DNA of 64,000 nucleotides, from NCBI GenBank assembly GCA_025594325.1, contig JANHCV010000007.1, forward strand, positions 620,001 to 684,000, in the 5' to 3' direction. This document shows positions 7,893 through 52,974 of this stretch, one piece after another (position 1 is the first letter of the stretch; each line of letters begins with the position of its first letter). The position numbers and the translations under genes were made by a program. This stretch comes from Blastocladiella emersonii ATCC 22665 (taxonomy: Eukaryota; Fungi; Blastocladiomycota). Below the pieces are notes generated by a model, which was not told the origin of the DNA, made no database searches, and saw nothing but the letters and a program-made list of their open reading frames with translations.

Positions 7893-8077
7893 GTTCGGGT
7901 GTGGTCAAGATTCATTCGCGGGAGAAGCAACCAAGGTCGGCGCAGCGCGAGAGTCAAGTCTCCTCGCCCTTTACCTTGCTTTCGCCTGTCCGACCTCGCC
8001 AACGAGAGACTGGCTGCAAGGGCTTTATGACAATCGCTTATATGCTTTGAAAGAGGTCAACAGGGTATCCTTAGTCG

Positions 8078-9183
8078 TCAGTCGAACGAGGGTAGCGCCG
8101 ACATGTGGTACCCGCTCGCTCCCTACCCGCTTGCTCGCGTCAGTCTCAGAACCACAACCCCACCTCAGAGCACGCGCACCTTGAGGGCCATGTAAATGTA
8201 AAACGAGACGTAGGCGCCCGGGAAGAAGGTGAAGAGCGCGAGCAGGCCGAACAGGAGCCCGCGCTGCGGCTCGGCCGTGATGGTCCAGATGAACACGGAC
8301 AGGAATGCGGAACCGACCAGCAGCAGGAACAGCGCCGTCACGATGGTCCGCGGGTACCGCGCGAGCAGCGGGCTGCGCCAGACCCTACGGTTTGATGGGG
8401 ATGGGTCAGTTGGGAGGGGGATCGGTGAGAGGAGGGGTGGGAGCGTACGGCGTGCTGGGATCCCCGCGGAGCGTGTCGTCGTCGAGGAGGTACACGTAGG
8501 GGCTGCGTCGTGCGCGCGGCGAGTGTTAGCGGATCGAGGTCGCGGGATGCTCGTCACAGTGAAGCGGCGCACTTTTCGGAGCGGCCAAAGATGACCGATT
8601 TGACCTACACAAGGACTCGCACGCGTCAGCGTCGTCCTTCTCGCGCACCAGCGAGTCGTACAAACGAGACGGGACCCACGCTCACCACCTGACCCGCCTC
8701 GGGCGAAACAGGTGAGCCGAGGTACGACGGCACATCGTAGGCACGCAACGAGGCTAGTACCGATTGCTGCTGCGCGGCGCTGCCGCCGCCGCCCGGCACG
8801 AGCGGCTTCCCCGTTGTCGATGTGGGCGAACGCCGGTGGTGCTCGGACCCGAGCAGCGCAGCGTGCGACCTGGACGGCAGCTCGCCCTGGCTCGCAACCG
8901 CCTTCTTATCCGTCGTGGCGGAGTGGAACGCGGCGAGCGTCGGCGACATGGCGGCCACGGGCGAGTGCCGCGTGGGGGACATGGGCGGCGCGGTGCCGTC
9001 CGCGACGGCGGCCTCGGTGCGCAGAGCCGACCCGCTCCGCGCGTGGACCGACGCGCCCGAGGCCAGGGCCACGTCGGACCCGTACTGGTCGCCGGTCGCG
9101 GGCTGGATGCTCGTCCGCCGCACGGGGACCGGTGACGACGCGGTGTTGCTGCTGCCCGCGTAGCGGGAGTTGGTGTCTGACAT
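8078..9183 (-). CDS. TMEM134/TMEM230-like (DUF872) two-TM membrane protein, multi-exon
   Basis: Low-complexity N-terminal exon (ORF 8626-9183). Hydrophobic core PLLARYPRTIVTALFLLLVG...FFPGAYVSFYIYMALK. Last exon GASGYHMSALPSFD* follows a GT-AG intron. Confidence 0.7.
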
Positions 9184-9700
9184 GGTTGCTTCACTAGCGA
9201 TGATTCATGGGATCGACGTGCGATGCGACGAGGGGGAGCCGACGACCTCCGAAGCGAATGCAGGCGGGGCGGAAAACGTGTCCCGCGCGCGCGTCGCGCA
9301 CGGCTCACCTGACCGCGGCCGCCGCGCGTTTGTCTCTGGCCGGGTGCGAGACACGCGCTATAATTAGCCGGGTTGCCCTCTCCCGCCGCAAAGCACGGCC
9401 TTGACCGCCGCGCCCTCGAAGAATTTGATCGGGGCGGCGAGCGCGCGATCAATTGGCCAATCACGGCCTACGCCGCCGCCGTGGAGGCCAGGGTTGAGCG
9501 CTCCGTTGCGGCAGCGCGCCGCGTCGCCACACCGGCCGGGTCGGCCGTCGCCGTGGTCGGTGGGTCGCGCCTGCCGCTCCTGTGCGCCGTCGACAGCGAT
9601 CGAGTTGATTGGAGTGCCGCGCGGCGGCCACGGGGGACCAGCAGCTCAAGCCGGGGCGGCGCCTCTGCTCCTGCCCTCCTTTCCCCGCACATCCTCCCCT

Positions 9701-9758
9701 CTCTCTCCCTCTCTCTCCCTCTCTCTCCCTCTCTCTCCCTCTCTCTCCCTCTCTCTCA
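9701..9758 (+). repeat. (CTCTCTCCCT)5 decamer tandem repeat
   Basis: Five exact 10-nt copies at 9701-9750 plus one partial copy, upstream of the channel start. Confidence 0.9.
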
Positions 9759-9839
9759 CTCGCAAACCCTCCCTCCCCCTTCCACCTCAGAGCCCCCATA
9801 GAGCGCCGGCATACCCTGCCCGCCCACCCACTGCCTGCA

Positions 9840-12800: not shown

Positions 12801-15800
12801 GGCGATTGACGAGAGTCTCGCGTGGCGCACCATCTTCTTCCTGGCGCTGTGCGTGTACACGGTGCTGATCTCGATGGTCGCGGGCATCGACAACGAGGAC
12901 GTCAAGATCCGCAAGATCCGCGAGTGGTGGGCGCTCGAGATCGGGTTCACGCTCGTGTTCGCGTTCGAGGTGGTCCTGCACCTGCTCACGGCCAAGTCGG
13001 CGCGCCAGTTCATCCGCGAGTACCCGTGGGACACGCTGCTGGCCACGGCGACCGTCATCATGCTCGCGCTGCCGTTCAATCGGTATCTCTCCGGGTTCCA
13101 GTGCTTCCGGGTGTACAAGCTTGTCACGTACCTCCCGCCCGTCAAGAAGCTGCTCGTCAAGACCAAGCAGTTTATCGGGATCTCGGCCGTCATCGAGTTC
13201 ATGGCCGTCGGGCTCGGGTGCCTCGCCACCATGGCCATGCAGCTGTTCGGCGGCGTCTACGAGTCGGGCAGCAGCGGGTCGGCGTGGACCACGTTCGACG
13301 ACCTCGGGTCCGCCTGGCTGTCCCTGTTCGCGCTCCTGACCGGCGACAACTGGACCAACTACCTGTGGCGCGGCATGGACGCGCACGGCGACGTGCCCTT
13401 CTTCGGGTCGTTCCTGTCGGCGCTGTGGATGGTGACGGCGTTCACGGTCCAGAACCTCGTCCTGCTCAACCTGCTGGTCGCCGTCCTCCTCGACGTCCTG
13501 CAGATCGACGACGACGAAAAGCGCGAGCGCCAGGTCGCCATGGTCGACGGGATCCCGCGCAAGCACCAGGAGACGTCGCGCGCCGCGGCCGTCCGCCGTC
13601 TGTTCGGCCAGGTCACGGGCGTCATCACGCAGGCCGCCGAAGTCATCGTGCGCCGCGTCGACGGCACGCCAATCGACTCGCGCCAGCAGCGCACCCGCCA
13701 GCAGCGCGACCAGGACGCGGCGCCGCAGCAGGCGCCGCCCGGCGGGTACGCCCTGGACGAGAACATGGTCGAGAACTCGGACGCCGCATCGGCAGTGGGT
13801 CGCCGACCTAGCTACAGCTCGCAGGCGCCCAACCTCTACTACGCCAGCCGCCAATTCAACGCCAGCGACTCGTACCTCAGCCGCCGCGCGCCCAAGTTCA
13901 GCTCGCTCGCGTACGGCATCGACCCCGACGACCCGATCCGCCAGGTCGAGGTGCCCGCGTCCTCAGGTATCAACGAGATCGCGATGCCGTCGCCGCTCCT
14001 GCTCCAGAAGGGCTCGCTCGATGGCACGGATGCGGCCGCCGCCGCCGGCAAGTCGCCCGGCAACAGCCGCCGCGGGTCGACCGCGTCGGGGCTCAAACAG
14101 CGGTCCACGGCCGAGTCCAGCCCGGCGGCGTCGTCGGCGGCCCTTCACGAGAGCCACGGGCACGTCGAGCACGCGGCGCCGCCCGCGGTCCCGTTCCGCG
14201 ACCGCATCATGAAGATCGTCGAGTCGCAGTGGTTCTCGGTCGCGACGTTCCTCGCGATCCTGTTCTCGATCGTCACGGCGGCGCTCGACACGCCCGAATA
14301 CCGGCTCGAGCGGCTGCGCGACAAGGACAGCGTGACGTGGGACCTGTACTTCACAGGCGACGTGGTGGCGACGGTCGCGTTCGCGCTCGAGTTTGCGCTC
14401 AAGATCGTCGGGATGCGCGCCGACTACTTCCGCGAGGGGTGGAACATCCTCGACTTCATCGTGCTCGTGACCATGGTCGCGAGTTACGGCGCCGACGAGG
14501 CCACGTCGCACGTCCTGCGCATGTCGCGGTCGCTGCGCCCGCTCAAGACCATCGTGTACCTTCCCGGCGTGCAGTCCATTTTCGCCGCGCTCGCGCTCGG
14601 CATGCCGCGAATCCTGTCGGCCATCGCCTTCTCCATGCTCATCCTGTTCCCGTACGCGCTGTACGGCATGTTCCTGTTCGCGGGCCGCCTGCGCCGGTGC
14701 AACGACACGGGCGTCAAGACGCGCGCCGAGTGCGCCGGCATGTTCGTGCACCCGGACTCGGGCCAGTGGGTGCCGCGCACCTGGGACAACGCGTACACGG
14801 CGTTCAACTGGGACTCGATGGGCAACTCGCTGCTGACGCTGTTCGTGATGGCGAGCGGCGAAGGGTGGACGGACCTCATGGCCATGACGCAGGCGATCCG
14901 CGGGCCCGACCTACAGCCGGCCGACGGGCCGCGCGCCGACGACCTCCCCGCGGCGTCGTGGTGGCACGCCCTGTACTCGGTGTCGTTCATGTTCATCGGG
15001 TCGCTCGCCACGCTGCAGCTGTTCATCTCCATCATCATCCAGTCGCTCGACGAGGCCACAGGCGCAGCGTACCTGACGGGCCCGCAGCGCGCGTGGCTCA
15101 CGGCGTGCAAGCGCATCTCGTCGCTCCGCGCGCGCCCGCTGCACCAGGCCCCCGAGAAGCGGTCCAAGCTCGGCCGCGCCGTCGGCACGTTCCTGCTCAA
15201 GCACGGCGATCGGCTCAACACGTTCGTCACGGCCACCATGACCGTCCACGTCCTCATGATGTGCGTCGAGCACGCCGGCCAGCCGCTGTGGCTCGACCAG
15301 ATCCGCGAGGTCGGCCTCCAGGCGCTCGTGTTCGTGTATTTTGGGCAGATGTGCCTCCTCATGGCGGCGCGCGGGCCGCTGCACTACTTCAAGAAGTCCT
15401 ACTGGAACGGCTACGACTTTTTTATCACGTCGACCGGCGTCCTGTTCGTCATCCTGCAGCTGTTCATCGACAACCCCATCTTCACCCGGCTCCAGAAGAC
15501 CCTGCTCATTGGGTACGCTCTGCGCCTCGCGCGCCGCGTGTCGGGCCTGCACACGCTGTTCAAAACGATGCGGTACGCCACTTTGTTCACTTCTCCCGTG
15601 CCTTGACGCTCGCTGACTTGCCTCCCACGTTTGTGCAGCGCTTCGGCCAAGGACCTGATGCGAATCTTCTACGTGCTCGCGATCGTGCTGCTCTTCTTCA
15701 GCCTGGTCGCGACCGAGCTGTTCGGGCTGACGCGGTACAACAACGCCTACTCGGGCTACGGCTCCGTGCGGTCGACGTGGCTCGCGCTGCTCGCCATGTT

Positions 15801-16712
15801 CCGCCTGACCACGGGCGACGACTGGCCCAACACCATGGACGCGCTCCGCGTCTCGTCGCCCATGTGCGTCACGGGCGCCGGGTACATGGGGTCCGATTGC
15901 GGGAGTCCGGTTTGGGCGTACGTTGGCGCGGGTTTGGGGGGTGGTGGTTCCGAGACTGACGAATTTGGGTGTACGCGTGTAGGATCGTGTTCTTCATCAT
16001 CTTCTTCATCGTGACGACCTACGTCGTGCTCAACCTGGTGGTTGCGCTGCTCACCAGCAACGTGCGTTTCATTGACCGCTGGCTCGCCAACTCCCGCAAT
16101 CTGACACCCATTCGCGACTGTAGTTTGACTACGTGTTCAGCTCGGACCACCTCATCATCTCGGACGACGCGCTGCGGTCGTTCCAGCTCGCGTGGGCGAC
16201 GCTCGACCCGCTCGGCACGGGCAAGATCAAGGCGTCGCAGGTCGCGCTGCTCCTGCACCGCTCGACGCTGCAGAAGATCGACTCGGAGCTCGCCGAGGAC
16301 CGGCGCTGGCGGTCGAACCTGCTGTACTACGTACGTCGTCGGGCAGCCGCACGCTCCACGGTCGCGATTTTGACTGACCACTCTTCATTCGATCGCGTAG
16401 GACCTCAACGCGCAGTGCAACGCCAACGGGCAACTCGGGTTCCAGACGGCGCTCATGACGCTGTGCCTGCACGTCATCCCGCTCGAGGACTGCCTGACGT
16501 ACCACCAGTACAAGGCGCGCGTGCAGTACCTGCGCAGCATCAGCTCGCAGATCGCGCGCGAGCGGCTCGTCGGCCTGTTCCGCATGGCTGTCGAGCGCCG
16601 CCGGTTCGTCCGCCTCGTCCACGCCGCGGTTCGTCAGCACCGCGAGGACGCGGCCGCCGCCAAGGCGGCAGCGGACACGGAGTCGGAGGCGGCGCGGGTC
16701 GTCATCGAGTAG
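9840..16712 (+). CDS. CCH1: Four-domain (4x6TM) Cch1/NALCN-type cation channel, about 5 introns; start is 9840 or 9999
   Basis: Four S1-S6 repeats. Pore loops AAGENW, LTGDNW, ASGEGW, TTGDDW. Charge-poor S4 segments. C-terminal FQLAWATLDPLGTGKI as in fungal Cch1. Introns near 11178-11242, 15572-15639, 15920-15982, 16062-16122 and 16331-16400. Confidence 0.88.
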
Positions 16713-17167
16713 AAGAGGGTCTTTTTCTCCGTTTTGGAGCTGTTTGCACGCCCCCCATTTCCAACCTCCACCACACAAACCAAACCCGTCCCGCATTAGC
16801 ATCATTTCGTAGTTTGGGTCGGCACCTCCATCATAAACTGTAACTTTTTAGGCACTCGGTTGTCATGGGTTCGGCCTGCAGCGACGCAGACGCTAAAGCT
16901 TGTCAGCACGCTCCGAACGCGGCGACCAACTGCCGCGCGGTCGCAGTTTCGCTCGGCCATGAGCGAGTGGACGCCAGACACCGCGTTGGGTGCGAGGCGA
17001 CCACACGCGGTGGTCAGGACGCGCGGCCTCAAAAGGCCCTTGCGTCGCGGGCGCTTTCCACACACGGCGGACTTGGTGCACACGGGACCGTACGCGCTGC
17101 ATCGCTTTCGGATACGTGCGCGTGAAGAAACCGTAGAGACGGTGGTGATGGTGGTGGCGGCGGCAGA

Positions 17168-17375
17168 TCAGGACGAGGTCGACGGTGAGGAGGGCGAGAC
17201 CCGCGGCGACGATGACGACGTGGACTTGGGCTGAGGCGCGACGCGGACAAAGTGGTAGCGGCCGAGAGCGAACCCGAAGATGTTGACCGCGGCGTTGCGG
17301 TCCCGCTGGACCCGAACGCCGCACGTCCGGCACGTCCGCGTCTTGTACAAACACGCCTGCCGCGCTGCTTTACGT
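17168..17375 (-). mobile_element. TnpB/Fanzor C-terminal remnant (Zn-ribbon + RuvC-III)
   Basis: YKTRTCRTCGVRVQRDRNAAVNIFG matches the CxxCG-x4-RDxNAAxNI signature. No RuvC-I/II found upstream, and the frame breaks near 17352. Confidence 0.75.
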
Positions 17376-17725
17376 CGGGCAAACCCATCCCACGCTCATC
17401 GCGGGTGGTCTGGCTCCGCACGACTGGGATTACTGCGATGCAATCCTGAAGTGGTCCGCCGATAGTCTCACCGCGTCGACTATCGTCTCGCTTCACGAGC
17501 TCGGCCTTGCAAATGACTCGGGTCGAGGACGCGCCGCGCCACTCACGTGAGGCACGGAACAGGTGATGCTCTAACGTGAACGCCCAGATGATAAACGTTT
17601 CTAGGGTAAACCGTACTTTTATGACTAAAAATAAACGTTGAAGCCATGAAATCCGGACGGTTCCCGCCGCCACGAGGCGTCCGGAGTGCACAGAATCGGT
17701 GAAGGGAACGAGGGAAGAAACAAAT

Positions 17726-20234
17726 CTAGGGGGAGGCCACGAACCACGCGCGGACCGCGGCGATGCGCGCGCAGAGCTTGCGGATCCACTGCGGCTTCTT
17801 GACACCCATCGGCTTGCCGTGCTCGCGTCGCCCCTGGGGCGAGGGCGCGACTGAGCCGACCACGGCGACCTTGGACGAGGTAGCCGCCGAGGAGCTGAGT
17901 ACGCGCTATGGGGGCGCGTCAAGTCAGTGATGGTGCCCACGGGGAGAGGTCCGAATCGGCGGCGAGCGAACGTACCTTGCCTCGAGCTGCGCTGGCTCGA
18001 CACGCGCGTCGACCTTGAGCAAGGCCGACTGGTAGTCGAGGTGGTCCTGGACCTGGACCGACTGCTGCTGCTCCTGGACCGAGTTGCCGTCCTTGTCCTC
18101 GCCGCTTTCCGGCAGCAGCGATGCATCGGCCTGGACAGGGAGCCGCCGATGGAGCGGCGACGTCGCAATGCCGTCAACCGCAAGCGGCTCCGCTGCCAGA
18201 TGACGACCGACGACGCACTGCTGCGGGACCGCGGCGATGATGGCCGTCGTCGTGTCACACGAACCGCCGTCTGGAACGGCGAGCTCGCACGACTCGACAA
18301 TGTCCCTACGATAGCGGGCGGCGACGTGTCAGTCCCGCTCGATACATGCGAGAACGCGGAGCAACGTACATCTCCTTGACTTCAGCAACGACGGCCGACG
18401 TGGCCGACACTGCGTGCGCCGCCGCCCCGCGCGCGAGTACCGAAGCCTCGCGACCTTGAGCGAAGGCGACGTCGGCGAGTGCCGGCCCGACCGCCTCGGC
18501 ATCAGCCGCCCGACGCGTGGGTGCAGAAGCCCCACAGACGTCGGCGAATGTGGCGTCAGCGTTGACGGTCGTGTCGGTGGTGCTGGCCGTCAGGTGGATC
18601 TCGGACGACTTGATCTCGATCTTGATCGCGCTGGCAGGAGCAGCGGGAAGCTTGGGGGCTATGGGCAAGCCCTCGCCGCGCATCGACGACGTGTGCTGCT
18701 CCTGCTCCTGCTCGTCGGCCTTGGTCTCGGCGGCGCGACGCTCGATGTCACTACATCGCCGAGTCGGTCAGCATCGCGTTCGACCCATCGAGTTAAGGCA
18801 ACGGAGGCGTACCGAGGGGACTGAGCGACCTCAGCGAGCGACGACTCCATCGGGTACACCGAGTCCACGAACTGCGCGGGAACCGTCGCGATTGACTTGA
18901 GAGCGCTGGATGGGTGCTCGACGTGGCTACACGTTACGCTCACTCGGGTTAGCGAACGTGGATCACGACGATCAAGCCGAGAAACGTACCCCGAAACCTG
19001 GTTGGCCTCCTCGGGCGTGGGCTCGTCCACCTCGGGGATCGACTCCAGCCGGAGCTCAAACATGACGAGCTTGGCGGCCGTGTACTTGTTGGGCACCCAC
19101 TCGCCATCGGCGCAGATCTTGATCAGGCGCTTGAGGCTAATGCAAGCACGAGGGCAGAGCGTCAGTGCCGTGGTCGTCGCTGGTCGACATCGAAGCTGAC
19201 GCACCTCGATGGCTCGATGAAGTCAGCGGCCTCCTGGATCAGCTCGGCAAGCGAGAGCGGCGCGAGAGTCGCGGTCGCGGTCGTGGTGCAGTCGGCCATG
19301 ATGATCGTCTCGGGCTTAGTCTGCGCGTCGACGTTGGCGTCGTCGACAATCGAGAGCTCGAAAGGGCAGCTACACGTTTGCACAAGTCAGCGATCAAGGG
19401 TGTGGTTGGTCGACTCACAACGCGTACCTCAAAGGCTCGCCCAGCTCCTCAGCCTCCTCGAGGATCGAGTCCAGCGTGGGAACCGCCGCCGTGGTGCGCT
19501 TGGCGGCCTTGCGCAACTTGGGCTTGGGCTGGATGCTGGCAGTGACGGTGCAAACGATCGGGAACTTGGGGAGGCTACACGCGAGGATCGCCCACGTCAG
19601 CGAATGTCCGCCCCTGCGAGTTATGAAGGAGATGTACCTCGCGGTCTTGGCCTCGATCATGTTCTCGAACGAAGTGTAGGTCGACTTGACGGCCTCGATG
19701 AGGCCCTCGAAGATCTCGGACGGGAACTCGGGGTCGAACGGCTCGGCCTCAGCGGCGGTCGAGGCGTCGGCGCAGGGCTCGTGCTCGACGAGCGCCTTGT
19801 CGAGGAGGTCCGTTGAGCTGTTGTTGGCGAAGACGCCCGAGTCGGCGGCGAGGATGGCGGCCTTGCGGGTCACCTCCGTGACGGCGGCGGTGGCGACATG
19901 GTTGCGCGGGAAGGTTGCGCGGATGGGCCTGGAAGACGTTGCATGGAGTCCATTAGTGATTCATCGTGGTGGGTGAGCGGATCGGGAGTGGTAGAGGTGG
20001 CGAGAGCGGCGACCGACGCGTGTGACCGCCACACGGAATGAGCGCGCTGCGCCACCATCCGAGAGCGACCATCACCACCGCTGGTACGGCAACGGTGCCG
20101 CTCGACCGGATCGGGCGAGATGGGGTGAGAGAAGCGCGGACGTACTTCTTCGCGAGGAGGTGCGGTCCAGCCGGCGCGACGACCCCAACGCCGACGTGGC
20201 CGACAAAGATCTTGAGCCCGCGACGGAAGCCCAT
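17726..20234 (-). CDS. Hypothetical multi-exon protein (no recognised domain)
   Basis: Coding-like segments with GT-AG borders: MGFRRGLKIFV (20234), MTRKAAILAADSGVF...EELGEPLR, CISLKRLIKICADGEW..., ...KKPQWIRKLCARIAAVRAWFVASP* (17726). Exon chain not fully resolved. Confidence 0.45.
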
Positions 20235-21602
20235 GGTGGCGGATCCGTGGATGCCGGTGTTGGATGAGCCGCGTGAGGGCGATGTGGAGAACGGCGGGGA
20301 GGGCGTGCGCGCAGTCAGCGGCGAGTCGAGGTGCTCGGGTGTTGGTGGATCAGCTGCTGCAGGCGGATGATAGATCGGGTCCGGGCGGGTCGTGTCCGAG
20401 GTAATGCACGAGTTCCTGCTGCTGCGGGTGCCGGTGGTCGCTGTTGGTTGGTCGAGGAACGATGGCGAGGACGGACGAGTGTGGTATGCGATTGATCAGC
20501 TGCGAATGGCCGAGTCGAACTGCGCGGGCGGACAGGTTGGGTGAGAGAGCAAGTCAAGGAGAGGGGAGGGGAGCTGTTTTCAGTGTGCCGGCCAGCAGCA
20601 GCGCAGGCGGTCCAACTGGATCCGTCGGCCGGGCGAACCATCTGTCTCCCTCCTGATACCTCGCGATCCAGTCCGTTCCATCGCATCGCGTGACAATTCT
20701 GTCAACCCGAGCAAGTTACACGGGCAAGGTGGGCGACACGCGACGCGCGAGGCCACGCGCCATGGGAGGCTCGGCTGCCCCACCACGCAGATCCTCGCGG
20801 TGCGTCATCGTACGCGTGCGTGTCGCGACCAACCGTGGCCACCACGAGCTCGAGCAACAGGCTGGACGATTTGTGATTGGAGCTGGTCAAGGCCATCGTC
20901 GAGATCCAACACAGCCAGGTCAAGTAGTACTCGACGTCTTGGCCGCGGTCGGACGCCGAATGACGCGGCCACGAGCAACACGCTGCTCAACTCACTTGCA
21001 CGCAAGCTGTCGGTTGTTCCGCAACAGGCACTGCACACGACTTGGTCGTGATGAGTCCTCGCTGCTGATCAGTTTGACCATGGTCGCGACGCGCTCTCTC
21101 ACGCCGTCTTCTCGCTGGCAGCTAAGCGTTCAGGCGATGAACGTCTCGGAGATCCTTCTTACGCGGTCACAGCATCCATGGCGCAAGTGCATGAGGTATT
21201 GCTTCTGATCTGTGCCAGTTGAAGGAGAGCAAAGAGGTCTGGCGCTCACCCACGAGGCGATCTGTCACAGCCAGCACGGGCCGCTGTGTCCTGGTCGATG
21301 GCCACGCTCGCGCGCGTCGCGACGGTCGCCGTCAAACGGGAGTCCCCTTCAGGGACACCGCACCACGGGCGACGGGATCTTCCGCCGATGGCCATGGGAA
21401 TTCGCGTAGTCGCGTAGTGTGAGACGGGTTGCAACGGAATTGGGCGACGCGTTTTTGCGACGCGACAAATGACGCGTTGTTCATGTCGGCTGGTCGCAAC
21501 GCGTGCGCGTCTCCCACTCCGCGTCCGCACTGCGACCAGGACAGCTTCCCCGCATTCAAGGTTGTGCCGTCGAAAAATGTATCAAATACTCTGCCGACCA
21601 AT

Positions 21603-40322: not shown

Positions 40323-42023
40323 ATGAAGCTTCATGTAACCGTTCTAGTCGAGGACATACTCGTTCGAGCGGTCCATCTCCACGACCCGATGGACGGAACT
40401 GGTCTGTTGCAGTACGCACGAGTCCTTCCGCAGAGCCAAGCACCGCGCGTCTTTCGCGCCGTCACGGAACGCGCGCTCAACGAGGTTTCTGTTGGCGACG
40501 CAGTGGCGAAAGGCCACGTCTGGGCTCTCAATTTATGGGCGGCGAGCGGTCAAACTCTTCGCATCGAGCAAGCCCAGTTCATGAAGGCTGTCCATGGCGG
40601 TCACTTTAACGTCGTGAACTGGCTGCGTCGTTCGCACATTTTTGTCAAAGAAGAGAGTCGTAATAGCGACGAGCGGAGACTGATGCGCTTGCTCTTGGAC
40701 GAGCAGCCGCCATGGTTTGAAGCCGTGCGCAGCAGTCTTGGCCCGGTGCGTCCTTGCCCGCTGCGGGCACGTTTCTTGGTCGACTTTGCTGACAAACCCT
40801 TTCCCATGATACAGGGCAGCCTCTCTTGCGCACCAGGCGACCTGCTTGCACTTCTTCTCTGTAAACGCATTGCTTCAGGCGAGACGAGCTTCCTGGAACT
40901 CAAAAATGCTCGACTGACCGAGTACGGCGCCCGCTTGCTTGCAGACGCGTTCGCCAGTCCAGCTCAACGGGTGGAGCTGATCAAGTTCAAGGATCTTTGC
41001 CTCTCATTTCCTGTGCTAGCGACGTTTGCTTTATCGAGCTCCGCGAAAGTGTTCAAGCTGTACGATGTGTTCTACGTCGAGGATGTTGCAGGCTCACCAA
41101 CTGCAATGCAGTGGCTCCCCAAAAGCGCCAAGGAGCTCTACTTTATGGGTTATAGGGACTTTCAGATGCCCAATTCAGCCCTTTACTTCCGCAACCTCCC
41201 TGATTCGCTCGAGCTGATTGATATCAACTCTCTTGACATGGACGTCGAAGACTTCGCGAACTTGGCGCATGGTATTCCCGGCAGCCTTCGCTCCCTGACC
41301 ATCATGGAGTTCTATCCTTGCCACGAGTCTTGTCAGGTCCTGATGGCACATCTTCCACCCACGCTCGAAGTGCTCAGGTTTGGGCCCGAGAAGTTTTACG
41401 CCAATACCGCACTTGCAATCGTTTCGAATCTACCACGATCTCTTCGCGAACTCGAACTTCAACTCAGTGAACTCAATTCGGATGGAGCCAAGGCTTTGGC
41501 CCTCAACATGCCACCTAAGCTCGAGATCCTACACCTAATGACGTGCGAGATTTATGGCGACGGACTACGCGAGCTTCTTGGTTCACTCCCTTCTACGCTT
41601 ACAATGCTTATTATTGAACGAGAAGCCAAGGTTACAGACGACTGCGCGGCCGCTCTCGCGCACAACTTTCCGCCGCGACTCAAGTCTCTCACCCTCGAAG
41701 GCGTAGTAGACCTGACATCAACTGGAGCGATGATACTTGCCGCGCATCTTCCCGCCGGACTCGAGATGTTGAATCTTGGGGGCAATGAGAGCATTGGTTC
41801 TGAAGCTGCGTTTCTAGTCTTTGCGAGTTCGCCCGCTTCATTGCGACATCTCTATCTGCAATCGGTTGGTTTGGATGACGCGTTTTTGAACAAGCTCAAC
41901 TGTTACATGATCGAAAACGGAAAGTCGTCGCTGCAAACACTTTCACTCAACCTTGAGCACAACGAGTTTGCCGCGGAAACTTTAGCCAAGTTTCGACCCC
42001 AAATCGATGCCAAGTTTGATTGA
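40323..42023 (+). CDS. RNI-like leucine-rich repeat protein, paralog 1 (intact; in-frame intron about 40747-40816)
   Basis: Repeats of the LPxSLxxLxL type. N-terminus MKLHVTVLVEDILVRAVHLHDP is shared with the two downstream paralogs, and the intron position is conserved. Confidence 0.8.
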   Translation: MKLHVTVLVEDILVRAVHLHDPMDGTGLLQYARVLPQSQAPRVFRAVTERALNEVSVGDAVAKGHVWALNLWAASGQTLRIEQAQFMKAVHGGHFNVVNWLRRSHIFVKEESRNSDERRLMRLLLDEQPPWFEAVRSSLGPVRPCPLRARFLVDFADKPFPMIQGSLSCAPGDLLALLLCKRIASGETSFLELKNARLTEYGARLLADAFASPAQRVELIKFKDLCLSFPVLATFALSSSAKVFKLYDVFYVEDVAGSPTAMQWLPKSAKELYFMGYRDFQMPNSALYFRNLPDSLELIDINSLDMDVEDFANLAHGIPGSLRSLTIMEFYPCHESCQVLMAHLPPTLEVLRFGPEKFYANTALAIVSNLPRSLRELELQLSELNSDGAKALALNMPPKLEILHLMTCEIYGDGLRELLGSLPSTLTMLIIEREAKVTDDCAAALAHNFPPRLKSLTLEGVVDLTSTGAMILAAHLPAGLEMLNLGGNESIGSEAAFLVFASSPASLRHLYLQSVGLDDAFLNKLNCYMIENGKSSLQTLSLNLEHNEFAAETLAKFRPQIDAKFD

Positions 42024-42035: not shown

Positions 42036-42056
42036 TATATATATATATATATATAT
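42036..42056. repeat. (TA)10 microsatellite
   Basis: Pure TA run just after the LRR1 stop. Confidence 0.9.
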
Positions 42057-42494
42057 TCTATTTGTTACTCGTTGTGAAAAGGTTTGCCTTCTGTCTGGTT
42101 CGCCAAAGACCATTCGAGGGCTAAAGCCCTCTTTCTAGACCGGGTCGCTGCCGGATAGGGTGCCGACGCTCACGTGAGCGCCATGCACGTGAGCGACCCG
42201 AAAACGCGTGACAGACGCGTCGTTTCTCATGTGACTGCTGTGGCGCAACGCGTCCTGGCCTTGCACGTGATCGGCCTCGGCCCAACCCGCGGAAGCGCCG
42301 CGCCGCGCCAACCACTCAAGGGCGAGCGGAGCGCGTTGCACCGACTCGCGTGCCTTCGCCAGCTTCAGAGTTCAAGAGGATCGGAGCGATGTGAACGTAG
42401 GAGAACGAAAAGTACATCTTTGTGCGGGAGGAAACAAGAGTCTGCGCGAGTCTGCGCGAGGGGAATGAACAGAGTCGGGGCGGGAGCGAGTGCA

Positions 42495-43376
42495 TCAGGT
42501 CGACGAGGACAGGCGGCCGCTGCGGCGCCGCTTGGGCTGCGCCTCGTGCTCGTCGTTGACGACGCACTCCTCGTGCTCCTCCTCGGCGGCCGCGGCGGCG
42601 GTCGCCGCCGTGCGCTTCGTCGCGTTGGCGGTAGACGTCGGGACACCGGCTTGGTCGTCACCGATGGCGGCGGGCGTGCACGCCGCGAGCGCAGCGGTTG
42701 TCGGAGCCGCAGCTGCGGCCGCGTCGTCCATGTCGCACCCGACCGACACGGAGTTTGAGTCCGGCACCCCCACGACGATTTTGTCGATGCTGCCGATCGC
42801 GATGAACGAGTGCGTCCAAATGGGGTCCGCGCAGCTCGGGAAGCCGCCGTACTTCTTGGTGCCGGTGTTCTTGCCGCCGGCGTTCTTGGTGTTGGCGGGC
42901 GAGTTGATGGCGGGCGGCACGACAGCGGGCGGCTGGATCGCGTGCTCCTGCGTCACGGGCGCCGCGGCGGGCGAGACGACGGCGGCCGAGATGTTGACGG
43001 GCTGCTGGATCGTGAGCTGCTGCGCCGCGGGTTCCGCGGCAATCGAGGCGGCGACCTGCTGCACACCGTGACCAGCGGCGCCCGATGCGACGCCGTTTGC
43101 CGCGGCGCGGGCGGCCTGGTGCGCGGCGAGGTTGTTGACAAAGTTCTCGCGGCCGTCGCGCATGCACTCGTGGTACACCTCCGTGGCCTCGTTGAGCTCG
43201 GCCCGCATGCCCTTCATCGTGCGCGGCACGCCTGCCGAGGTGAAGGCCTCGTCGCCGGGGAAGCCCGGGTCGTCGTCGGATTCTGAAGAGTCCGACGCGT
43301 TCACGTCGCAGAGGAACCGCGGCTGCGGCGGTGCCGTCAGCGTCGCGCGAGCCGGAGCCGTGCTTGGCGTCGTCGG
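42495..43376 (-). pseudogene. Element A antisense accessory ORF (N-terminally truncated)
   Basis: Shares QPRFxxDV..DPxF, MxGxxxELN and KRTAA..EAxPKRRRxGR with the element B antisense ORF; no ATG. Confidence 0.7.
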
Positions 43377-43377
43377 T

Positions 43378-45891
43378 CAGTCGGAGAACGACATTGTTCT
43401 CGACCCGACTATCGTCAACTCGGACGTGGAGGGCATCCTGGCCGACAACGGCGAAACCGAGGCGAACCTCGAGCGCATCAAGAGCGTGACCTCTACGCTG
43501 ATCCCTGGAATGGGCCACGGCATGATGGGCACCCTGCTCTTCCCCGACGTGCAGCCGTTCGATGTCAACGCCGCGCCGCCGCCGCCGTACCTCGAGACGC
43601 CCATCTCGCCGACTGACGTCAAGAAAATCATGGCTCAACTATGCGCTGCCGCGGCTCAAGGTCATCCGACCGCGGATGTCGGCGCCGTACCTGTCGTTCC
43701 CGGGCCCAGGCAGCCGCCCATGATCGGTATTGTTCCCGCAGTGCCATCTGGAGCCTTGAAAAACACATCTCAGCATGGTATCGACCCGGAAATGGCCGCC
43801 GACGTGCCCGAACCAGAACTCGGACCAGCCGTCGACGTTTGGCGCAGCGCCTTCACAACCACGCCAACGGATCCTGACGCGCGCGCGCGGTTCCTCATCA
43901 CCAAGGCCGCGCACTCGATCAGCAACTTTGCCTACGACACACGCGGCGACGAGTGGAGCGACGGAAAGCAGCGCACTGTGCACACGCCCGCGTACGCGAG
44001 CCTCGCGCAGGTCTCGCTCAAGTTCAACCTCAACGAAGAGCAGCACCGCGCGTTCGTGCTCTTCCTCATGCCGCTCATCGACATCTTCATCGGCGGCAAC
44101 GCGGGTATCGCTCGGCCGAGCAGAACGTGATCCTGTTGGGCCGCGACAACGTCCAACATGTCGTCGGCACCGCGGCCCTCCCGCCCATGAGCAAGGACCG
44201 GACGCCGATCATCCTCACCGGCTTGGGCGGCACGGGCAAGTCGCGCGTCGTCGATGCAATCCGATACTTTCTCGCGTCCTGGAACCGGGAAAGTGCCTCA
44301 TGGTCATGGCCATGACCGGGATCGCGGCCGCCAACATTGGCGGTACGACCATCCACGCCGCGTTCTCTTTTTCGCTAAGGCCGAAAGAAAACAGCCCGGA
44401 CGTGGCCCGTTTGCGTACCGATCCTGCGGTTGCCATCGCGTGGAAAGGGCGTCTCGGCGTCGCCATCGACAAGTTCTCCATGTGCGATGCGACTTTACTC
44501 GGCCGTATCGACGCGAACCTGCGCCTCCTGCGGCGGTGCGACGAACCATTCGGCAGGTGCATCGTCATGCTCGCTGGCGATCATTTACAGCTGCCTCCCG
44601 TCAACGGAACTGCCCTGTACAAGGTGCCCGCCGTGCTCAACGACGCGCCGGACTCGTTCTACCTGCGCATGACGTCAAATCAATTGACGGTCCCCGAGCA
44701 CGTGGATCGAGGCCAGGTCGCGTACTGGCGCACTACACGCGCTGTTCGTCTCTTGAAGAGCAACCGATTTGTCGACGATCCACCATGGGGCAACGAAATG
44801 GACGCGCTCCGCCTCGTCGAGGCGTCGGACACGCTGTGCGACCTGATCAACTCGCGTACGAACACTCAGCTTCAGCAGCAGGTCGACGAAAACGGCAACA
44901 ACATCCTCAAGGAGATCCTCAAGAAGCCCGGACTCAAGGTTATCGCGCCCGACAACCACACGCGCCACGCCTTCAACCTGCTCTACACGCGGCTCGCAGC
45001 AGCAAACCCGAACCGCGTCGTGTTCCAGATCAAGGGCAACATCACGCGCCCGCGTGATAGGCGCCGCACGCGTGAACGCGTCGCCATCTGCGACAAGGAC
45101 GTGTTCCGCCTCGGAGGAGAGCCAGAAACCACGACTGAACTGCCGGCCATCCTCGAGCTCTTCGTCGGAATGGAGATGCGCGTCAAGACCAACCAGTGCG
45201 TAGCAAAGGGGTGCGCGAATGGTGCGGTTGGCGTCGTGCACCACATCGACTGGAAGCCCGAGACCACGTTCACGCGAACCGCGTCCAACATGTACCGGCC
45301 ATCCTGCGCTCCACTCAACGTGTGGATCGACCTGCCCGACGCTCCTCGTGGCCCTCGCTTCCCGGGCATGCCGGCCGCGTGGCCTGACACGGTCATCCCG
45401 CTTGCCGTGGAGAAGAAGGACTTCCTGTACATGGCGGGCAGTTCCACGTCGCGAGAGCGGGTCGTCAGCACAACGGGGGATTCGCTCCCGCTCTGTGTCA
45501 ACAACACCAAAACCAACAGGAGCAAGTATCCTAATCATGTCGTTGCGCACATCAAGCAGTACCCGATGGTACCAGCCTTCGCCATGACCCAAGAGCCGTG
45601 CTCAAGTCCTTGAAGCCGGATCCACTCGCAGTGGCCGAGGACAAGCGGCTCCAGATGCTCGGCGAGCTGACCAAGACCGCTTTCGATCAAGGTACAGCCA
45701 TCGCACCAGGCGACCCGCGCATCGCCAAGCTCTTCGACGACGCGATTCTCTTCTCGCGCCAGCACGCGGCTGAGAAGCTAGTCACCAAGCGCGCGTCAGA
45801 TGCTCTCAACGCAAGGTTTTGGCGATTGGCCAAGAAACGTGCTGGAGGCGAGGACGGCTCACAGAACGCCAAGAAACAGAAAACACAGTAG
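43378..45891 (+). pseudogene. Element A PIF1-family helicase (RepHel C-terminal part), disrupted
   Basis: LNEEQHRAF, GLGGTGKS, MTGIAAANIGGTTIH, IDKFSM (Walker B E->K), GDHLQLPPV, VGMEMRVKTN..CANG, YPMVPAFAMT. Frameshifts near 44105 and 44290; motifs V-VI deleted. Confidence 0.88.
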
Positions 45892-46332
45892 AGTATTAAC
45901 GTAGTGTATTCCATCATCTAATCCGTCAATAGCACGATTTCCATAGCTCGATCACCTAAATCTCCTGTGCGGGACGCACGGGACAGCACCTCCACCAGAC
46001 GTGCACCATACGGGGCGGGGGCTTTAGCCCTCGATTGAAAGCCAAACGCGAAGCGTTTAGGTGCCTCAAGTATAATTTGTTATCGAGGGCTAAAGCCCTC
46101 TATTTTTGCCTAGCCGACGCGCGTCCTTGGGATCTGACGTGTCTCCCTGGCCCACGTGCGTCACGCACGTGTTTCACGGGATATAACCAACGCGTCTGAG
46201 TCTCCCACCACCAAGCTCTCTCGCCTGCAGTCAATCGTGATAGTAACAAAAAAAAATCAAGTATTGTGAATGAGAGGACAGCAACAACAAAGGAGGGAAA
46301 CGGAGGAAGTGGAGAGAGGAACACGACGTCGT

Positions 46333-47325
46333 TCAGTTAACTGAACGGCGGCCACCGCCACGGCCGCGGCGACGCTTGGGCATCGCCTCGAACTCGTCCT
46401 CGTCGTCGTCACCGCCCTCTTCGGCGGCCATGGCGGCCGTGCGCTTGGGCGCGTCAGCAGGAACGGCCGTGGCCAACGCGACCCCGCGATCCGTCGTGCC
46501 CGCCTCCTCAATGATGGGCGCCGCGAGCGCGACTGTCGCACTTGAAGTCGACGACGACGACAATGACGACGACGACGACGCGGCCGACGACGCGGCCGAC
46601 GAGCCGACCGGCGGCCCGGCGGGCTGTACGGCGGTCGAGAGCGTCGAGGTCGACAACGACGAGGCGACGGTCGCGTCGACCTGCGAAAGGGCGGGCTGCA
46701 CGGCGGTCGAGGATGACGACGACGCGTTGGTGATCTGCGGTGCGGCGGTCTGCACGGCCGTCGTTGAGGAGGACGACGAGGCGACGCCGTCGTTGAGCTC
46801 GCGCAGGATCCCCGCCATGCGCGTCGTGAACTTGGGGTCCGAGTCGCCCTCCTCGTCGGACACGTCAAACACGAACCGCGGCTGGCGCACGGGCGAGGAC
46901 AGCGCCAGCCCCGACAGCTGCGTGGCTGGGGTCGGCGGGATGGACTCCTGCGGGCGGGCGCCGTACGGGTTGCTGCGGCCCGCGGGACCGCCGTGATGGT
47001 GCGCCGGCGGCGGCAGAGCGGGCGCCGACGACGAGCCCGCGGGACCACCGTGATGGTGATGGTGATGGTGGGCCGGCGGCGGGACGGCGGGCGCCAACGA
47101 CGAAGAGGGGGTCGACGGCGGGTTGAAGGACGCGGCCGTCGACGGCTGCTGCGGCGGGACGGCGGGCGTTGACGAAGAGGCGGGCGCCGACGACGAGGAA
47201 GAGGGGGTGGAGGGCGGGTTGAAGTACGAGGCCGGCGGGGGCATGGCGGGCGCCGTGGGCGCCGAAGGCGGCGGCGCCGGCTTGGTGATCTGCTGCTGCT
47301 GCTGCAGCTGCACCTGCGCAATGAA
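46333..47325 (-). pseudogene. Element B antisense accessory ORF (S/P/A-rich, C-terminal NLS-like motif, N-terminally truncated)
   Basis: Open frame of more than 326 aa, homologous motifs to the element A ORF, followed by a pyrimidine-rich host-like 3' UTR. Confidence 0.7.
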
Positions 47326-47349
47326 GTCACATAGCGGCCGCCGGGATCT

Positions 47350-50300
47350 TCTCGCACAAGTTCGCGCCGCTGCTACTGTACCAGGCGATGCCGTGGCTCG
47401 ACCTCACGGGCGTCGCCGCTGGCGAGGTGTCCGAGCAGGATGTCGAGTGCATCGCAAGCACCATCAGCGTTGACGGCAAGCCGATGCTCAACGTCGCGCT
47501 GCACGACTACGTGTTCCGCCCGCCCGAGCTCGAGAATCTGTTGTGGTACGAGTTTATCTCCTCGTGGTCGCGCGTCAACATGCCGCCGAAAATGCACGAG
47601 GTCCTCGCCAACGGCGGGCGCGTCGTGCCCGCGCAAGCAGAACTCGGGCCAGCTGCCGACATGCCGCCCGGCACGAGGCTGTCCTTCATGGCCGACCACC
47701 CGCAGGCCAAGACGCACGAGCTGCGCAAGAACATCGTCGAGGTCGTGCCCAAAATCGTCGGCCCGCACATGCCCGACCCGGGCAAGTTTGGCGACGTGCC
47801 CAGGTCCGAGGAAAAAGTACTCGCGCATGGCGCTGCTGCTGCTCCGCCATTTCCGCGTCTCGAGTGACATTCTCAACGAGAACGGCTCGGCGATCGCCAA
47901 GTTCAAGGCGTTCAAGAAGGGCCTCCAACCCGGCGACCCTGCGCTCAACCACCTCGAGTACGCCCAGGAGTACTACTTCAGTCTCGACGGTGCGCGCGCG
48001 TACCGTGAGTGCCGCGATCGCGAGAACGCCGAGCTCTCGGCCAGGCTGTCGCAGGAGGAGCGCGGCGAGCTGTTCGTTCCATCTCGCGACGGCGACCGCA
48101 ACGCGTCAAGCTCGCGCGCCAAGGCAACCGCCAACGAGGACCCGACTGCAGAATGGACCATGTTCACTCAGTCGCAGCAGGACATTGCCCTCGATCTGGT
48201 CATTGCCAACAACGCCGTGAACGGTGCTGGCGCCGAGGTCGCGCCCACCGTTAGCGAGCAGAACTTCAAGCTGGTGATCGACGCGCTGGTCCCTGGTGCT
48301 GCTGCAGACCTGGTCGACCACCTGCGCCTCCCTCCAGTGCGCCCGTTCGACGTCAAGGCGGCCGTCCCACCGACGACGCTCAAGGAGCCCATTTCGGCGA
48401 ACACGCTGAAAAGATTCCTGGCGCAGCACCGCAGCGCCGCATCTGCAGCGCCGGCCGCTGCTGGAACAGCTCCTGTCGCTCCGCAAGGCGGGCAGTCGCC
48501 GCTCGTCGGCGCGTCAACCACGTCAGACGCTGCTGCCGAGTCGCAGATCGGCGTCGATCCTGAAAACGTCGTTGAGGACGGTCCAGCAGCGCCAGAAGTA
48601 CCCGCCGCCGACGTTTGGCGCGGTACCTTCGCCGCGAGATCAACGGAATCTGCAGCGAAGCGCAAGCTGTTCCTCGTCATGAAGGCTGCGGACTCGCTCA
48701 ACAACTTTGACCACGCGACTCGCGGCAAGGAGTGGACGGAGGCGGAGCAGCGCACCAAGCACACGCCGGCGTACGCGAGCCTCGCGCAGGTTTCGCTCAA
48801 GTTCAACCTGAACAAGGAGCAGCACCGCGCGTTTGTGCTCTTCCTCATGCCGCTCATCGCCACGTTCATTGGCGGCGACAGCGGTGTTGTCGAGGCCGCC
48901 GCGTCATCGGATCCAGGCGCCCTCGCGTCGGGCCGCGACCGGCCAAACGCACCAGCTCTCGCCTCGCTTCCGCCCATGAGCAAGGATCGCTCGCCGATCA
49001 TTCTCACAGGCTCAGGCGGCACGGGCGGCACGGGCAAGTCGCGCGTCATTGACGCGATCCGGTACTTTCTCGCGTCCTGGAACCGCGAAAAGTGCATGAT
49101 GGTCATGGCCATGACGGGCATCGCTGCCGCCAACATTGGCGGTACCACCATCCACGCCACGTTCCAGCTCTCGCTCAAGGGGGAGAGTCTCAGCCCCGAC
49201 ATCCAGCGCATCCGCACCGACTCTGCTGTCGCCAGCGCGTGGCAAGGACGTCACGCCGTGATCATCGACGAGTTCTCCATGTGCGACGCGCAGGTGCTCG
49301 GACGGGTCGACGCGAGCCTTCGCGACCTGCGTCGGTGCGACGAGCCGTTTGGCGGGTGCATCGTCATGCTCGCCGGCGACCATTTGCAGCTTCCACCAGT
49401 GAACGGCACGGCGCTGTTCCAGCTACCCGAGGTGCTCGACGATGCGCCAGACTCGTCCTTCGAGCGGCTGCTCGCGTACGACACCACGGGCGCGAAAAAA
49501 AAAGAAGCACTCGGGCCAGCTCGCGTACTGGCGCGCGCGACGTGTCGTTCGACTCGTGCGCAGCAACCGGTTCGTCAACGACCCATCATGGGCCAGGTGT
49601 CTCGACGCGTTCCGCCTCGACAAGGCCCCCGACGAGCTGCGCCGCCCGCTCGACTCGCGCACGACCGCTCGCCTGCGCCAGCTGAGCGACGACCAGGACA
49701 ACAACGAGCTCAAGAAGATCCTCCAGACGCGCGGGCTCACAGTCATTGCGCCCGACAACTACACGCGTCACACCTTTAACCTGCTGTACACGCGGCTCGC
49801 CGCTGCGGACCCAGAACGCGTCGTGTTTCAGATCAAGGCCAGCATCACGCGCAAGAAGGAGCGAAACGGCGCAACCGTCCGCCTCCCGAATGGCGAAAGG
49901 GACCTGTTCCGTCTCGCCGAGGAGCCCGACTCGATCACTCGTTTGCCAACCATCCTCGAGGTCTTTGTCGGCATGGAATTGCGCGTCAAGGTCAACCAGT
50001 GCGTCGAGAAGGGGTGCGCGAATGGCGCTATCGGCGTCGTGCACCACATCGACTGGTTTCCGGGCACAACGTTTACCGAGATCGGCTCGCGCATGTACTG
50101 CTCATCGCGGGAGCCACATACTGTGTGGATCGACCTGCCCGACGCGCCACCTGGCCCTCAGTTTCCTGGCATGCCGGCCGATTGGCCAGACACGGTCATC
50201 CCGCTCGTCATGCACTCGGACGACTTTCTCTACAAGGAGGGCGGTATGACGTCGCGCGAGCGAACCGAACCCAAGAAACCTGAGTCCAGCGCACTGTGCG

Positions 50301-50860
50301 CCAAGATGGTCAAGAACTTCGATATTCACGAGCAGTACAAGGACCACGAAAAGGTCAAGATCAAGCAGTTCCCAATCGTGCCCGCCTTTGCGATGACGGT
50401 GCACGGGGTCCAAGGCGTGACCAAGAACGCCATCATCTTGACGGATCCGTGCCCAGCTGGCTCGTCGGGATCAATCAACGGGTCGTCGCTGTACGTTGCG
50501 CTCTCGCGGCTCCGCGAGAGCGCGTTCCTGTGGGTTCTCCATCCGATCCCGGACAGCGTGTACGACGCCATGGTCCCTGATCCGCGGGCCGTGGCCGAAG
50601 ACTTGCGGCTCCAGGCGCTAGACGTGTTGACTGAGGGCGCGTTCGCTCACGGACAAACCGTTACGCAAAACCACCCCCGAGTCGCGGAGCTCTTTTGCAA
50701 CGCGATGCAAGAGCACCGCCAGATCAAGAGCGACAAGGAGGCGAAGCAGAAGGCGCGCGACCAAGAGTACTCGAGGCGGTATCGCGAGCGTAAGCGCGAG
50801 CAGAAGCGCGCTCCAGAATTGCATGAGCAGCGGCGGAGCAAGAGGCTTCGCGAGATTTAG
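47350..50860 (+). pseudogene. Element B RepHel linker + PIF1 helicase with two +1 A-run frameshifts
   Basis: FSHKF, HDYVFRPPELENLLWYEF, DHPQAKTHEL, VPKIVGP, GGTGKS, IIDEFSM, GDHLQLPPV, FPIVPAFAMTVHGVQG, LYVALSR. Frame shifts at A5 (about 47812) and A9 (about 49495). Confidence 0.88.
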
Positions 50861-51111
50861 TGTAAGTTTTCATTTGTAGTGTTTTAAAGTATACTTAGCT
50901 GCTTTCAATTATTTTGGTGTGTGATGGGAACAGAGATGCGACTCCATAATGACGCGCGACTGTCAGCGGTACAAAACCTCCCGCGTGTGCCGTGCTCCAA
51001 CGTGGCGGAGGGCTTTAGCCCTCGATTGAAGACCAGACGCGAAGCGTCTAGGTGGTTCAAGTAAAATGGTCTCCAATTGTTTTGCGAAGTGGCTGTGACG
51101 CGTCTCACGCC

Positions 51112-51150
51112 GTGAGACGCGTCTCGAAATCACGCCATGATCACGTGTGG
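51112..51150 (+). promoter_or_regulatory. LRR upstream motif (copy 2)
   Basis: GTGAGACGCGTCTCGAAATCACG...GATCACG, about 120 nt before ATG 51256. Confidence 0.55.
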
Positions 51151-51255
51151 GCGTTTTGCTCTGGTTTTCAGCCACGTCTCTTCAGCTGCAGACTCCGCGC
51201 CGGACCCGTTCGCTTGACCCACTCCCGCACATGCATCATTAGAACGAATAACTTC

Positions 51256-52974
51256 ATGAAGCTACATGTAACCCACTTGCTCGAGGACATTCTTGTTCGA
51301 GCAATCCGCCTCCACGACCCGACCGACCGTTTCGGCTTGGCGCACTACGCTCGAGTCGTTCCACGTGCTCAGGCTCCTCGCGTCTTTCGCGCTGTTGCCA
51401 ACCATGTTGCTACCGGCTATTCTACGCTTGCAGCGGCCCAGGCTGGTCACTTTTGGGCCCTTGAGCTGAAGCAGGCGAGCGGCCACCCGTTGGAGCTCAC
51501 GGAATCTTGCGTGAGACACCTCGCGCTCCACGATCGACAGTACAAAGTCCTTGAATGGTGGCGCCGTCGCGGATTGCGGGTCTTCGGTCGCAAACAGGAC
51601 AAGTTTGTTAACGTCTTGATGGACCTGACTCCATCCTGGTTCGCAAATGTGCGGAACACCCTTGGTCCGGTCCGTGCTCACTGCTCTCTGAGACGATTTG
51701 ATTTGATGCTAACCGTGCGCCGTTTGACTTAGGACACGATTCTTTGCTCACCGGGAGATATGCTTGCTGCCCGAATGTGCGCGGACGTTGCTTCGGGCGC
51801 AAAGACCCGTGTCAAGCTCGAATCGGTTCGCCTGAGCGATGGCGGCGCCCGCATGTTGGCTGAAGCCCTAGCCAGTCCCACGCAACGGGTCAAGAAAATC
51901 GAGCTTTCGTTCTCTTGCGTTTCCATGGACGCGCTTGCAACGCTTGTTATGTCAAGTACGGCGACCGCGATCGACTTGTCTTGCAGCTATATTGTAGGCG
52001 ACATGCCGTGGCCAACCGATCCCCCGGTTTGGCTTCCTCATTCGGTCAAGGAGCTTTCGTTCCACGGCGACGACGAGTCACGCTACGATCAGTCTGCCAT
52101 CTTGCTTCGCCAGCTGCCGATTTCCCTCCAGCGGCTCTCCATCACTTACCTGCCCTCTGTCTATCCAGGGGCTATTTCGAGCCTGGTTTCTTCGCTTCCG
52201 AGCTCGCTTACTTTTCTCGCGCTCAACGAGGTCGATCTGAGCGTCGATGATGGCAAGGCTCTCATGTCGCGGCTCTCTATCGCTCTCAAAGAATTTTCGA
52301 TCTCTCCCGGGTATGATGACCCCCATTCCGTTGATTGCATGCTCGAAATCGTGGGCAGCTTGCCGCTGTCGCTCCGCAAGCTCTCCCTCAAACGGTGCGA
52401 CCTGCTCACAGAGGCCGCGAGTCTCCTCGCGTCCAAGATGCCGCCAAATCTTGAAGAGTTCCGTTTACGCGATTGCAATCTCCGCAATGATGGGGAGCGT
52501 AAGCTTTTCGCCGCTCTCCCTCTCACGCTCAAGGTGCTAGAAATCGCCGGCAATCCTGACATTCCTATTGAGTTCGATGCTGAGTCGGAGGGCACTGACC
52601 AGCTCGCCTAGGCACTTGCGCCCAACTTGCCACCCAACCTGACATGGCTTGCAGTCCAGTACATGGGTCTTACTTCCCACGGCGCGATGCTGCTTGCTGG
52701 CGGTCTTCCGTCATCGTTGCAAACGTTGATTCTGTCCGGCAACACGATCAATTCGGAGGCGGGACTCGCCGTGTTGACCAAGTCTCACGGCTTTCTCCAC
52801 TCCCTTGAGCTCGACCAAAACGAACTGGACGACGCCTTCTTCGACGGGATCAACAAGCTGCTTGATGAGCTTCAACTTGGCGTGTTGGAATCGCCTGTCC
52901 TCGATCTCTATGAGAACAATTTTTCGCAGCAGGCCTGGGAGGCCATTCGAGGTCGGATCAAGATTCACTCTTAG
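51256..52974 (+). pseudogene. RNI-like LRR protein, paralog 2 (in-frame TAG at 52609-52611)
   Basis: MKLHVTHLLEDILVRAIRLHDP; intron about 51670-51732; LRRs continue after the stop. Confidence 0.78.

Follow-up and report, generated by a model that had tools for sequence, protein, structure and literature searches.

Transposons of the HLE2 class, for which DUF6570 serves as a marker, have been characterized with HELIANO by terminal inverted repeats of 12-18 nt, a 3' stem-loop and T-T insertion (PMC11417382). Among fungal members, hairpin-forming asymmetric terminal inverted repeats (ATIRs) at both ends have already been published for FoHeli1 and FoHeli2 of Fusarium oxysporum, which belong to the Helitron2 group (Chellapan et al. 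2016, PMC5148889), and the genome paper of the blastoclad Blastocladiella emersonii does not discuss transposons (PMC9730499). In B. emersonii ATCC 22665, a window of 64,000 nt (positions 620,001 to 684,000 of contig JANHCV010000007.1; an exact match to locus L006 at an offset of 33206) carries two elements arranged head-to-tail in the same orientation, e1 at 42114-46076 and e2 at 46083-51067, both on the + strand. They are very probably separate, internally deleted insertions of two related, distinct Helitron2/HLE2 families, A and B, movable in trans only. Their end design, which a preliminary description of this DNA had presented as special, was thus already known from FoHeli1/2.

Nine further loci of the B. 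emersonii genome, retrieved through exact-protein look-up, provided other copies. Family A includes e1, L004:2984-11662, L005:7003-13068, L008:8546-12622, a solo 3' end at L008:1312-1371 and a fragment at L009:10435-12476, and family B includes e2, L001:9093-14099, L002:9055-20590, L003:8315-11648 and an 84%-identical fragment in L007 ending at 12788. Element e1 (3963 bp) is a Rep-less, decayed Helitron2-type copy whose ends are common to the L004, L005 and L008 copies (94-98% identity), and e2 (4985 bp), likewise Rep-less and decayed, has its ends in common with the L001, L002 and L003 copies (92-97% identity), with unrelated flanks in both families. Between e1 and e2, the helicase region (about 1.65 kb) is 74% identical at the DNA level, and no alignment is possible over the 5' 1.3-2.1 kb. 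The preliminary description had named, as the test of its boundaries, whether the terminal motifs bound other repeated copies. They do so at all eight 5' ends and all ten 3' ends, on six contigs, with the 3' ends coming from eight loci and the flanks being unrelated.

Every 5' end opens with TCGAGGGC, upstream of which the sequence is unrelated, and the base preceding the 5' TC is T, A, G, G, A, A, G and A in the eight copies. The 3' ends are composed, in ten of ten cases, of the inverse repeat, the stem, CAAG (CGAG in L007) and a family-specific tail, after which unrelated flanks begin. Following CAAG, TATAAT and then divergence were found in all five family A 3' ends, and family B has TAAAAT in three copies, TAAAT in L003 and GAAAAT in L007. 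The family specificity of these six bases shows that they are mobilised as part of the element and do not derive from the target, which places the 3' tip 6 nt beyond CAAG. The ends had been set earlier at CAAG|T, with the inverse repeat stopping 36 nt before them and 12 nt separating the two elements. As judged from the ten 3' ends, the right inverse repeat instead ends 42 nt from the tip, e1 and e2 end at 46076 and 51067, respectively, and the spacer is the 6-nt TTGTTA (46077-46082). The tip of e1 would be 46075 if the final T is the target's. The 3' tails on the + strand occupy 46062-46076 in e1, ending CAAGTATAAT, and 51053-51067 in e2, ending CAAGTAAAAT. Moreover, a T is invariant at the eight 5' junctions and the ten 3' junctions, which fits the T/T rule for HLE2, and no target-site duplication was found at the family A and B copies examined.

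The corrected tips also bear on whether e1 and e2 could be canonical Helitrons (HLE1), or hybrids with HLE1-type cut sites, A|TC...CTRR|T. The 5' end does start with TC and CAAG does lie near the 3' end, and the preliminary description had seen canonical termini (A|TC...C(A/T)AG|T) mixed into the elements. However, CAAG is internal and is replaced by CGAG in L007, the 5' flank base varies, and the closest homologues have DUF6570; in place of a 3' CTRR tip 10-12 nt past the hairpin with A/T insertion, the elements end in TAWAAT, 15 nt past the stem. A canonical or hybrid identity is, accordingly, highly improbable.

Both elements start with the 18-mer TCGAGGGCTAAAGCCCTC, which occupies 42114-42131 in e1 and 46083-46100 in e2 (+ strand) and, as had been claimed, folds by computation into a 6-bp self-hairpin, GAGGGC-TAAA-GCCCTC. 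The repeats had also been called identical, which is true of the right ATIR of e2 (51008-51025, + strand, 18/18) and fails by one mismatch in that of e1 (46017-46034, + strand, 17/18). In the window, the 18-mer has five matches at four distinct sites, with a shuffle expectation of 0.07. The short ATIRs, of which the right copy is subterminal, and the 3' stem-loop downstream of the right repeat are features of HLE2/Helitron2. This stem-loop lies 8 nt after each inverse copy and folds as previously described, with an 8-bp stem, a GAA loop and a bulged A. It reads CCAAACGC-GAA-GCGTTT(A)GG in e1 (46042-46061, + strand) and CCAGACGC-GAA-GCGTCT(A)GG in e2 (51033-51052, + strand; z = -4.07 for the 71-nt end), and a further short helix, TTGA(A)/(T)TCAA, lies around it. 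At its tip the stem carries d(GCGAAGC), which is of the d(GCGNAGC) kind, an extraordinarily stable DNA mini-hairpin of the GNA type (PMC13037366), and the only loop variant, GCGGAGC in L007, changes the free N position.

The GAA-loop stem with its bulged A is present in ten of ten 3' ends, where 98.8% of stem cells are paired, and over the three helices of the aligned ends 93.7% of cells are paired, compared with 28-46% when the partners are slid. Only one pair is changed on both sides, being A-T in e1 (AAACGC/GCGTTT) and G-C in e2 (AGACGC/GCGTCT); it is AU in five ends and GC in five, segregating exactly with family. This compensatory pair is a single event separating families A and B. The covariation reported earlier is therefore real, but its presentation as direct evidence of selection on structure was overstated, because it represents one event, and an accidental compensated pair of this kind has, by our own rough estimate from the six differences between the consensus tails of the two families in 42 nt, a chance of about 5%. 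We regard the pair as suggestive of selection on structure.

A PIF1-like helicase is encoded by both elements (PF05970, E = 2.6e-15 in e1 and 3.4e-26 in e2), in each case broken across three reading frames (the frame changes of e1 by tblastn), and no Rep domain was found in e1 or e2. The remnant of e1 (linker and helicase, 43380-45888, + strand) is colinear with residues 1283-1549, and that of e2 (post-Rep linker and helicase, 47325-50860, + strand) with residues 959-1499, of P0007, a distant full-length homologue of 1713 aa with DUF6570, Helitron_like_N and PIF1, with which the copies are colinear by tblastn. Homology on P0007 starts at residue 959 for e2, 835 for L001 and 584 for L009, and the landmarks of this protein are the HUH motif at 652 and 654 and the invariant tyrosines at 886 and 890; the coding remnant of e2 begins downstream of the Rep tyrosine motif. 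Parts of Rep are retained in sister copies. The two-tyrosine motif FYATKYSTK survives in P0003 and P0156, immediately preceding the segment at which e2 starts, and P0157 keeps the HUH motif HTLHSHGLLW together with a Helitron_like_N match in the right position (E = 1e-4, below the Pfam cut-off).

Queried exhaustively with HMMER, the e2 open frame returned close same-genome paralogues and thousands of PIF1-type proteins. Among the 23 closest homologues longer than 1500 aa, Helitron_like_N is present in 22 and DUF6570 in 19, while the DUF6570-bearing region is deleted in the copies examined, so that the HLE2 marker is known here from homologues only. The Helitron2/HLE2-like assignment of the preliminary description is upheld by the PIF1 helicase, the Rep remnants in sister copies, DUF6570 in the nearest full-length homologues, and the ATIRs with the 3' stem-loop.

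One deletion junction is common to e1, L004 and L005, where L008 and L009 keep at least 1.3 kb of Rep-linker; similarly, e2, L002 and L003 have a common 5' structure and deletion junction, distinct from L001. Deletion junctions common across loci indicate that Rep-less forms spread to new contigs after Rep loss, and such spread needs a trans-acting RepHel. We infer that a Rep-Hel protein of a complete relative mobilised these copies in trans.

Some points weigh against separate insertions of trans-mobilised families as described above. A living autonomous partner is hypothetical: no complete autonomous RepHel was found among the reachable annotated proteins of the genome, and a search for an autonomous copy with the Rep remnants P0003 and P0157 returned the fragments P0156 and P0157 only, proteins above about 900 aa lying outside its range. 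No empty site is available for families A and B, so that the cut positions given here are provisional and the terminal Ts may belong to either the element or the target. In addition, the conservation of structure rests on invariant pairs and one compensatory event, and the roles given to the hairpins below are assigned by analogy alone.

Several candidates for empty sites were considered. The intergenic regions of the tandem leucine-rich repeat (LRR) paralogues in the window are unalignable, with only a promoter motif in common, and the nested insertions in L002 and L004 are unrelated terminal inverted repeat (TIR) elements that are uninformative for families A and B. Exact-protein look-up of the upstream flanking LRR gene for other assemblies or alleles gave no record. 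Around P0007 (L010), a scan for ATIRs gave no exact inverted repeat of at least 11 nt between the flanks covered.

Based on studied Helitrons and other HUH transposases, a possible course of transposition can be proposed. With the whole of Rep lost and the helicase frameshifted, mobilisation would occur only in trans, through the Rep-Hel protein of a complete relative. The + strand would be transferred, carrying the GAGGGC/GCCCTC hairpin at a distance of 2 nt from its 5' tip and a second time at 44-59 nt from its 3' tip, and a like hairpin at both ends might give Rep one shape to recognise. The stem with the very stable GCGAAGC tip, which lies 15 nt before the 3' tip of the element, is presumed to mark the transfer stop, and cleavage may take place after ...TAWAA(T). 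The excised strand would then be ligated at a T of the new site, with no target-site duplication, and the 6-nt spacing of e1 and e2 would represent two hits at one favoured spot rather than a concatemer.

Two LRR genes on the + strand flank the pair. The stop codon of LRR gene A (40323-42023) is 90 bp upstream of the 5' end of e1, and the ATG of LRR gene B (51256-52959) follows the 3' end of e2 at a distance of 188 nt. The adjacency might be explained if both families favour a narrow target region in front of genes of a single F-box/LRR family, into which e1 and e2 inserted independently, and we give this a little less than an even chance. LRR gene B has its conserved upstream motif 44 nt, and its ATG 188 nt, beyond the tip of e2, and in L008 an independent family A copy stops about 200 nt short of the start of an LRR paralogue that has the same orientation. 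However, an LRR gene lies downstream (E < 1e-5) at only two of the eight 3' ends examined, and no common target sequence is visible at the junctions. The regions downstream of the 3' tips, at 51068-51260 of the window and L008:12623-12840, each lead to a same-family LRR paralogue about 190-200 nt on. What these regions have in common is limited to a short promoter motif (GATCACG and the bases around it), so that 3' transduction is excluded.

It is also possible, if rather unlikely, that the ends or hairpins of resident elements attract the transposase, by which new copies come to lie next to old ones. Element e2 begins 6 nt past the e1 tip, and in L005 a third hairpin-ATIR element sits right after the hairpin of a family A 5' end. 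Comparable cases have been reported, in which FoHeli4 inserted 2 bp from the 5' end of another copy and three tandem copies occur in Metarhizium acridum (PMC5148889). Nevertheless, the other ends examined (L001 to L004 and L008) have no neighbouring element of these families, and the two cases are indistinguishable from a common hotspot. A rolling-circle concatemer, or one tandem duplication of a single element, as the head-to-tail, same-orientation arrangement of the pair could suggest, is for practical purposes excluded by the divergence of the helicases and 5' modules (for which the preliminary description had likewise rejected a recent tandem duplication), by the 92-98% identity of each element to dispersed copies of its own family, and by a 6-nt spacer at the junction instead of joined ends.

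Returning to independent insertion at preferred sites, it may be suggested, doubtful as the generalization is, that blastoclad Helitron2 families choose their targets non-randomly, in the F-box/LRR promoter-proximal zone, at resident hairpin ends, or both. If so, a rolling-circle transposase that selects its sites would regularly generate pairs like e1/e2, and the elements could shape the birth and death of the F-box/LRR gene family. On present evidence, the adjacency and the LRR-gene association are not surprising.

The third element in L005, here called family C, is 1.9 kb long (L005:7021-8947) and is nested 21-22 nt inside the family A 5' end. It starts with TGCGGGGCTTTGCCCAAG, which contains the hairpin GGGC-TTT-GCCC, and an inverse copy ends 43 nt before a tip ending in AAT; its 3' tail folds no better than shuffles and was left out of the evidence for the stem. 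With e1 and L004 serving as empty sites (CCCTCTTTCTAGACC), the family C insertion lacks a target-site duplication, with an ambiguity of one T at most. As a possible abutting 5' end, the sequence that follows the 3' tip of L005 (GTCGAGAGC...) was considered and dropped, no matching inverse repeat having been found.

Other features of the copies were noted as well. Unrelated TIR transposons lie within the family A copy of L004 (L004:3210-5610 and 7355-9801) and within the family B copy of L002 (L002:11392-13894, 15066-18802 and 20203-20536), and the right ATIR of the latter is interrupted by one small insertion. The solo family A 3' end at L008:1312-1371 has a degenerate ATIR, the stem-loop and the TATAAT tip, and is located about 7 kb upstream of the fuller family A copy. 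The family A fragment at L009:10435-12476 is truncated on both sides and is the only copy seen still encoding the Rep HUH motif; the P0157 gene model joins it to unrelated upstream exons. At L007:10001-12788, the gene for P0005 is annotated as a DHHC palmitoyltransferase fused to the family B helicase fragment, a fusion that probably reflects faulty gene modelling over an old, truncated insertion.

The 5' module of each element also contains a putative antisense, low-complexity open frame (42498-43376 in e1 and 46336-47403 in e2, - strand). These frames are Ser/Ala/Pro-rich in both families and have in common a short motif (PRF..DV.. with an acidic run) and a basic KRRR tail, with weak similarity only between e1 and e2 (BLASTP E = 6e-4). 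Each element further contains a pair of CACGTG palindromes, separated by 10-15 nt and situated about 50-90 nt in from the 5' tip (42165-42195 in e1 and 46152-46180 in e2), in surroundings that are otherwise unalignable, and these could be a promoter or a binding site. A (TA)n microsatellite (42036-42057) is present inside the 90-bp stretch between LRR gene A and e1, and the 8-mer ATTTGTTA found in this region occurs again across the e1/e2 spacer.

With the B. emersonii copies, Helitron2-type families with precise boundaries become available from an early-diverging fungus. The corrected junctions are useful for annotating this genome and for designing polymerase chain reactions on circular intermediates. 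The combination of hairpins at both ends with a GAA-loop stem is known from FoHeli1/2 of Fusarium and is here extended to very distant fungi; GAA loops and adjacent insertions have likewise been described for FoHeli1/2.

IS200/IS605-family HUH transposons, such as IS608, carry subterminal hairpins at both single-strand ends, are cleaved at a set distance from them and leave no target-site duplication. The present elements resemble them in the hairpins at both ends and in the lack of target-site duplication, as a mechanistic analogy only; the IS elements are prokaryotic, use a Y1 transposase and have no helicase, and there is no sequence relationship. With HLE2 elements, families A and B have in common the 18-nt inverted repeats, the stem-loop past the right repeat and the T at both junctions, and their closest RepHel homologues have DUF6570; they differ in that DUF6570 and most of Rep are deleted in the present copies (PMC11417382). 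Unlike Helentrons (HLE2 subgroup b), the present copies yielded no endonuclease domain (Exo_endo_phos by Pfam, in the element open frames and sister proteins), which makes e1 and e2 elements of the Helitron2 type and not Helentrons. FoHeli1/2 start, as these elements do, with TC and a terminal hairpin that is itself the ATIR, and carry an inverse hairpin copy before the 3' tip (38-51 bp in FoHeli, 42 nt here), GAA triloops and an A/T-rich 3' tip; they also lack target-site duplications, are about 5-6 kb long and occasionally have adjacent or tandem copies (PMC5148889). In contrast, the terminal sequences are unrelated (TCAGCC-GAA-GGCTG and ATATTTT in FoHeli), the GAA loop is placed here in a separate third stem instead of in the ATIR, and all copies seen here are without the N-terminal half of Rep and carry an antisense open frame, in a blastoclad host where FoHeli has an ascomycete one.

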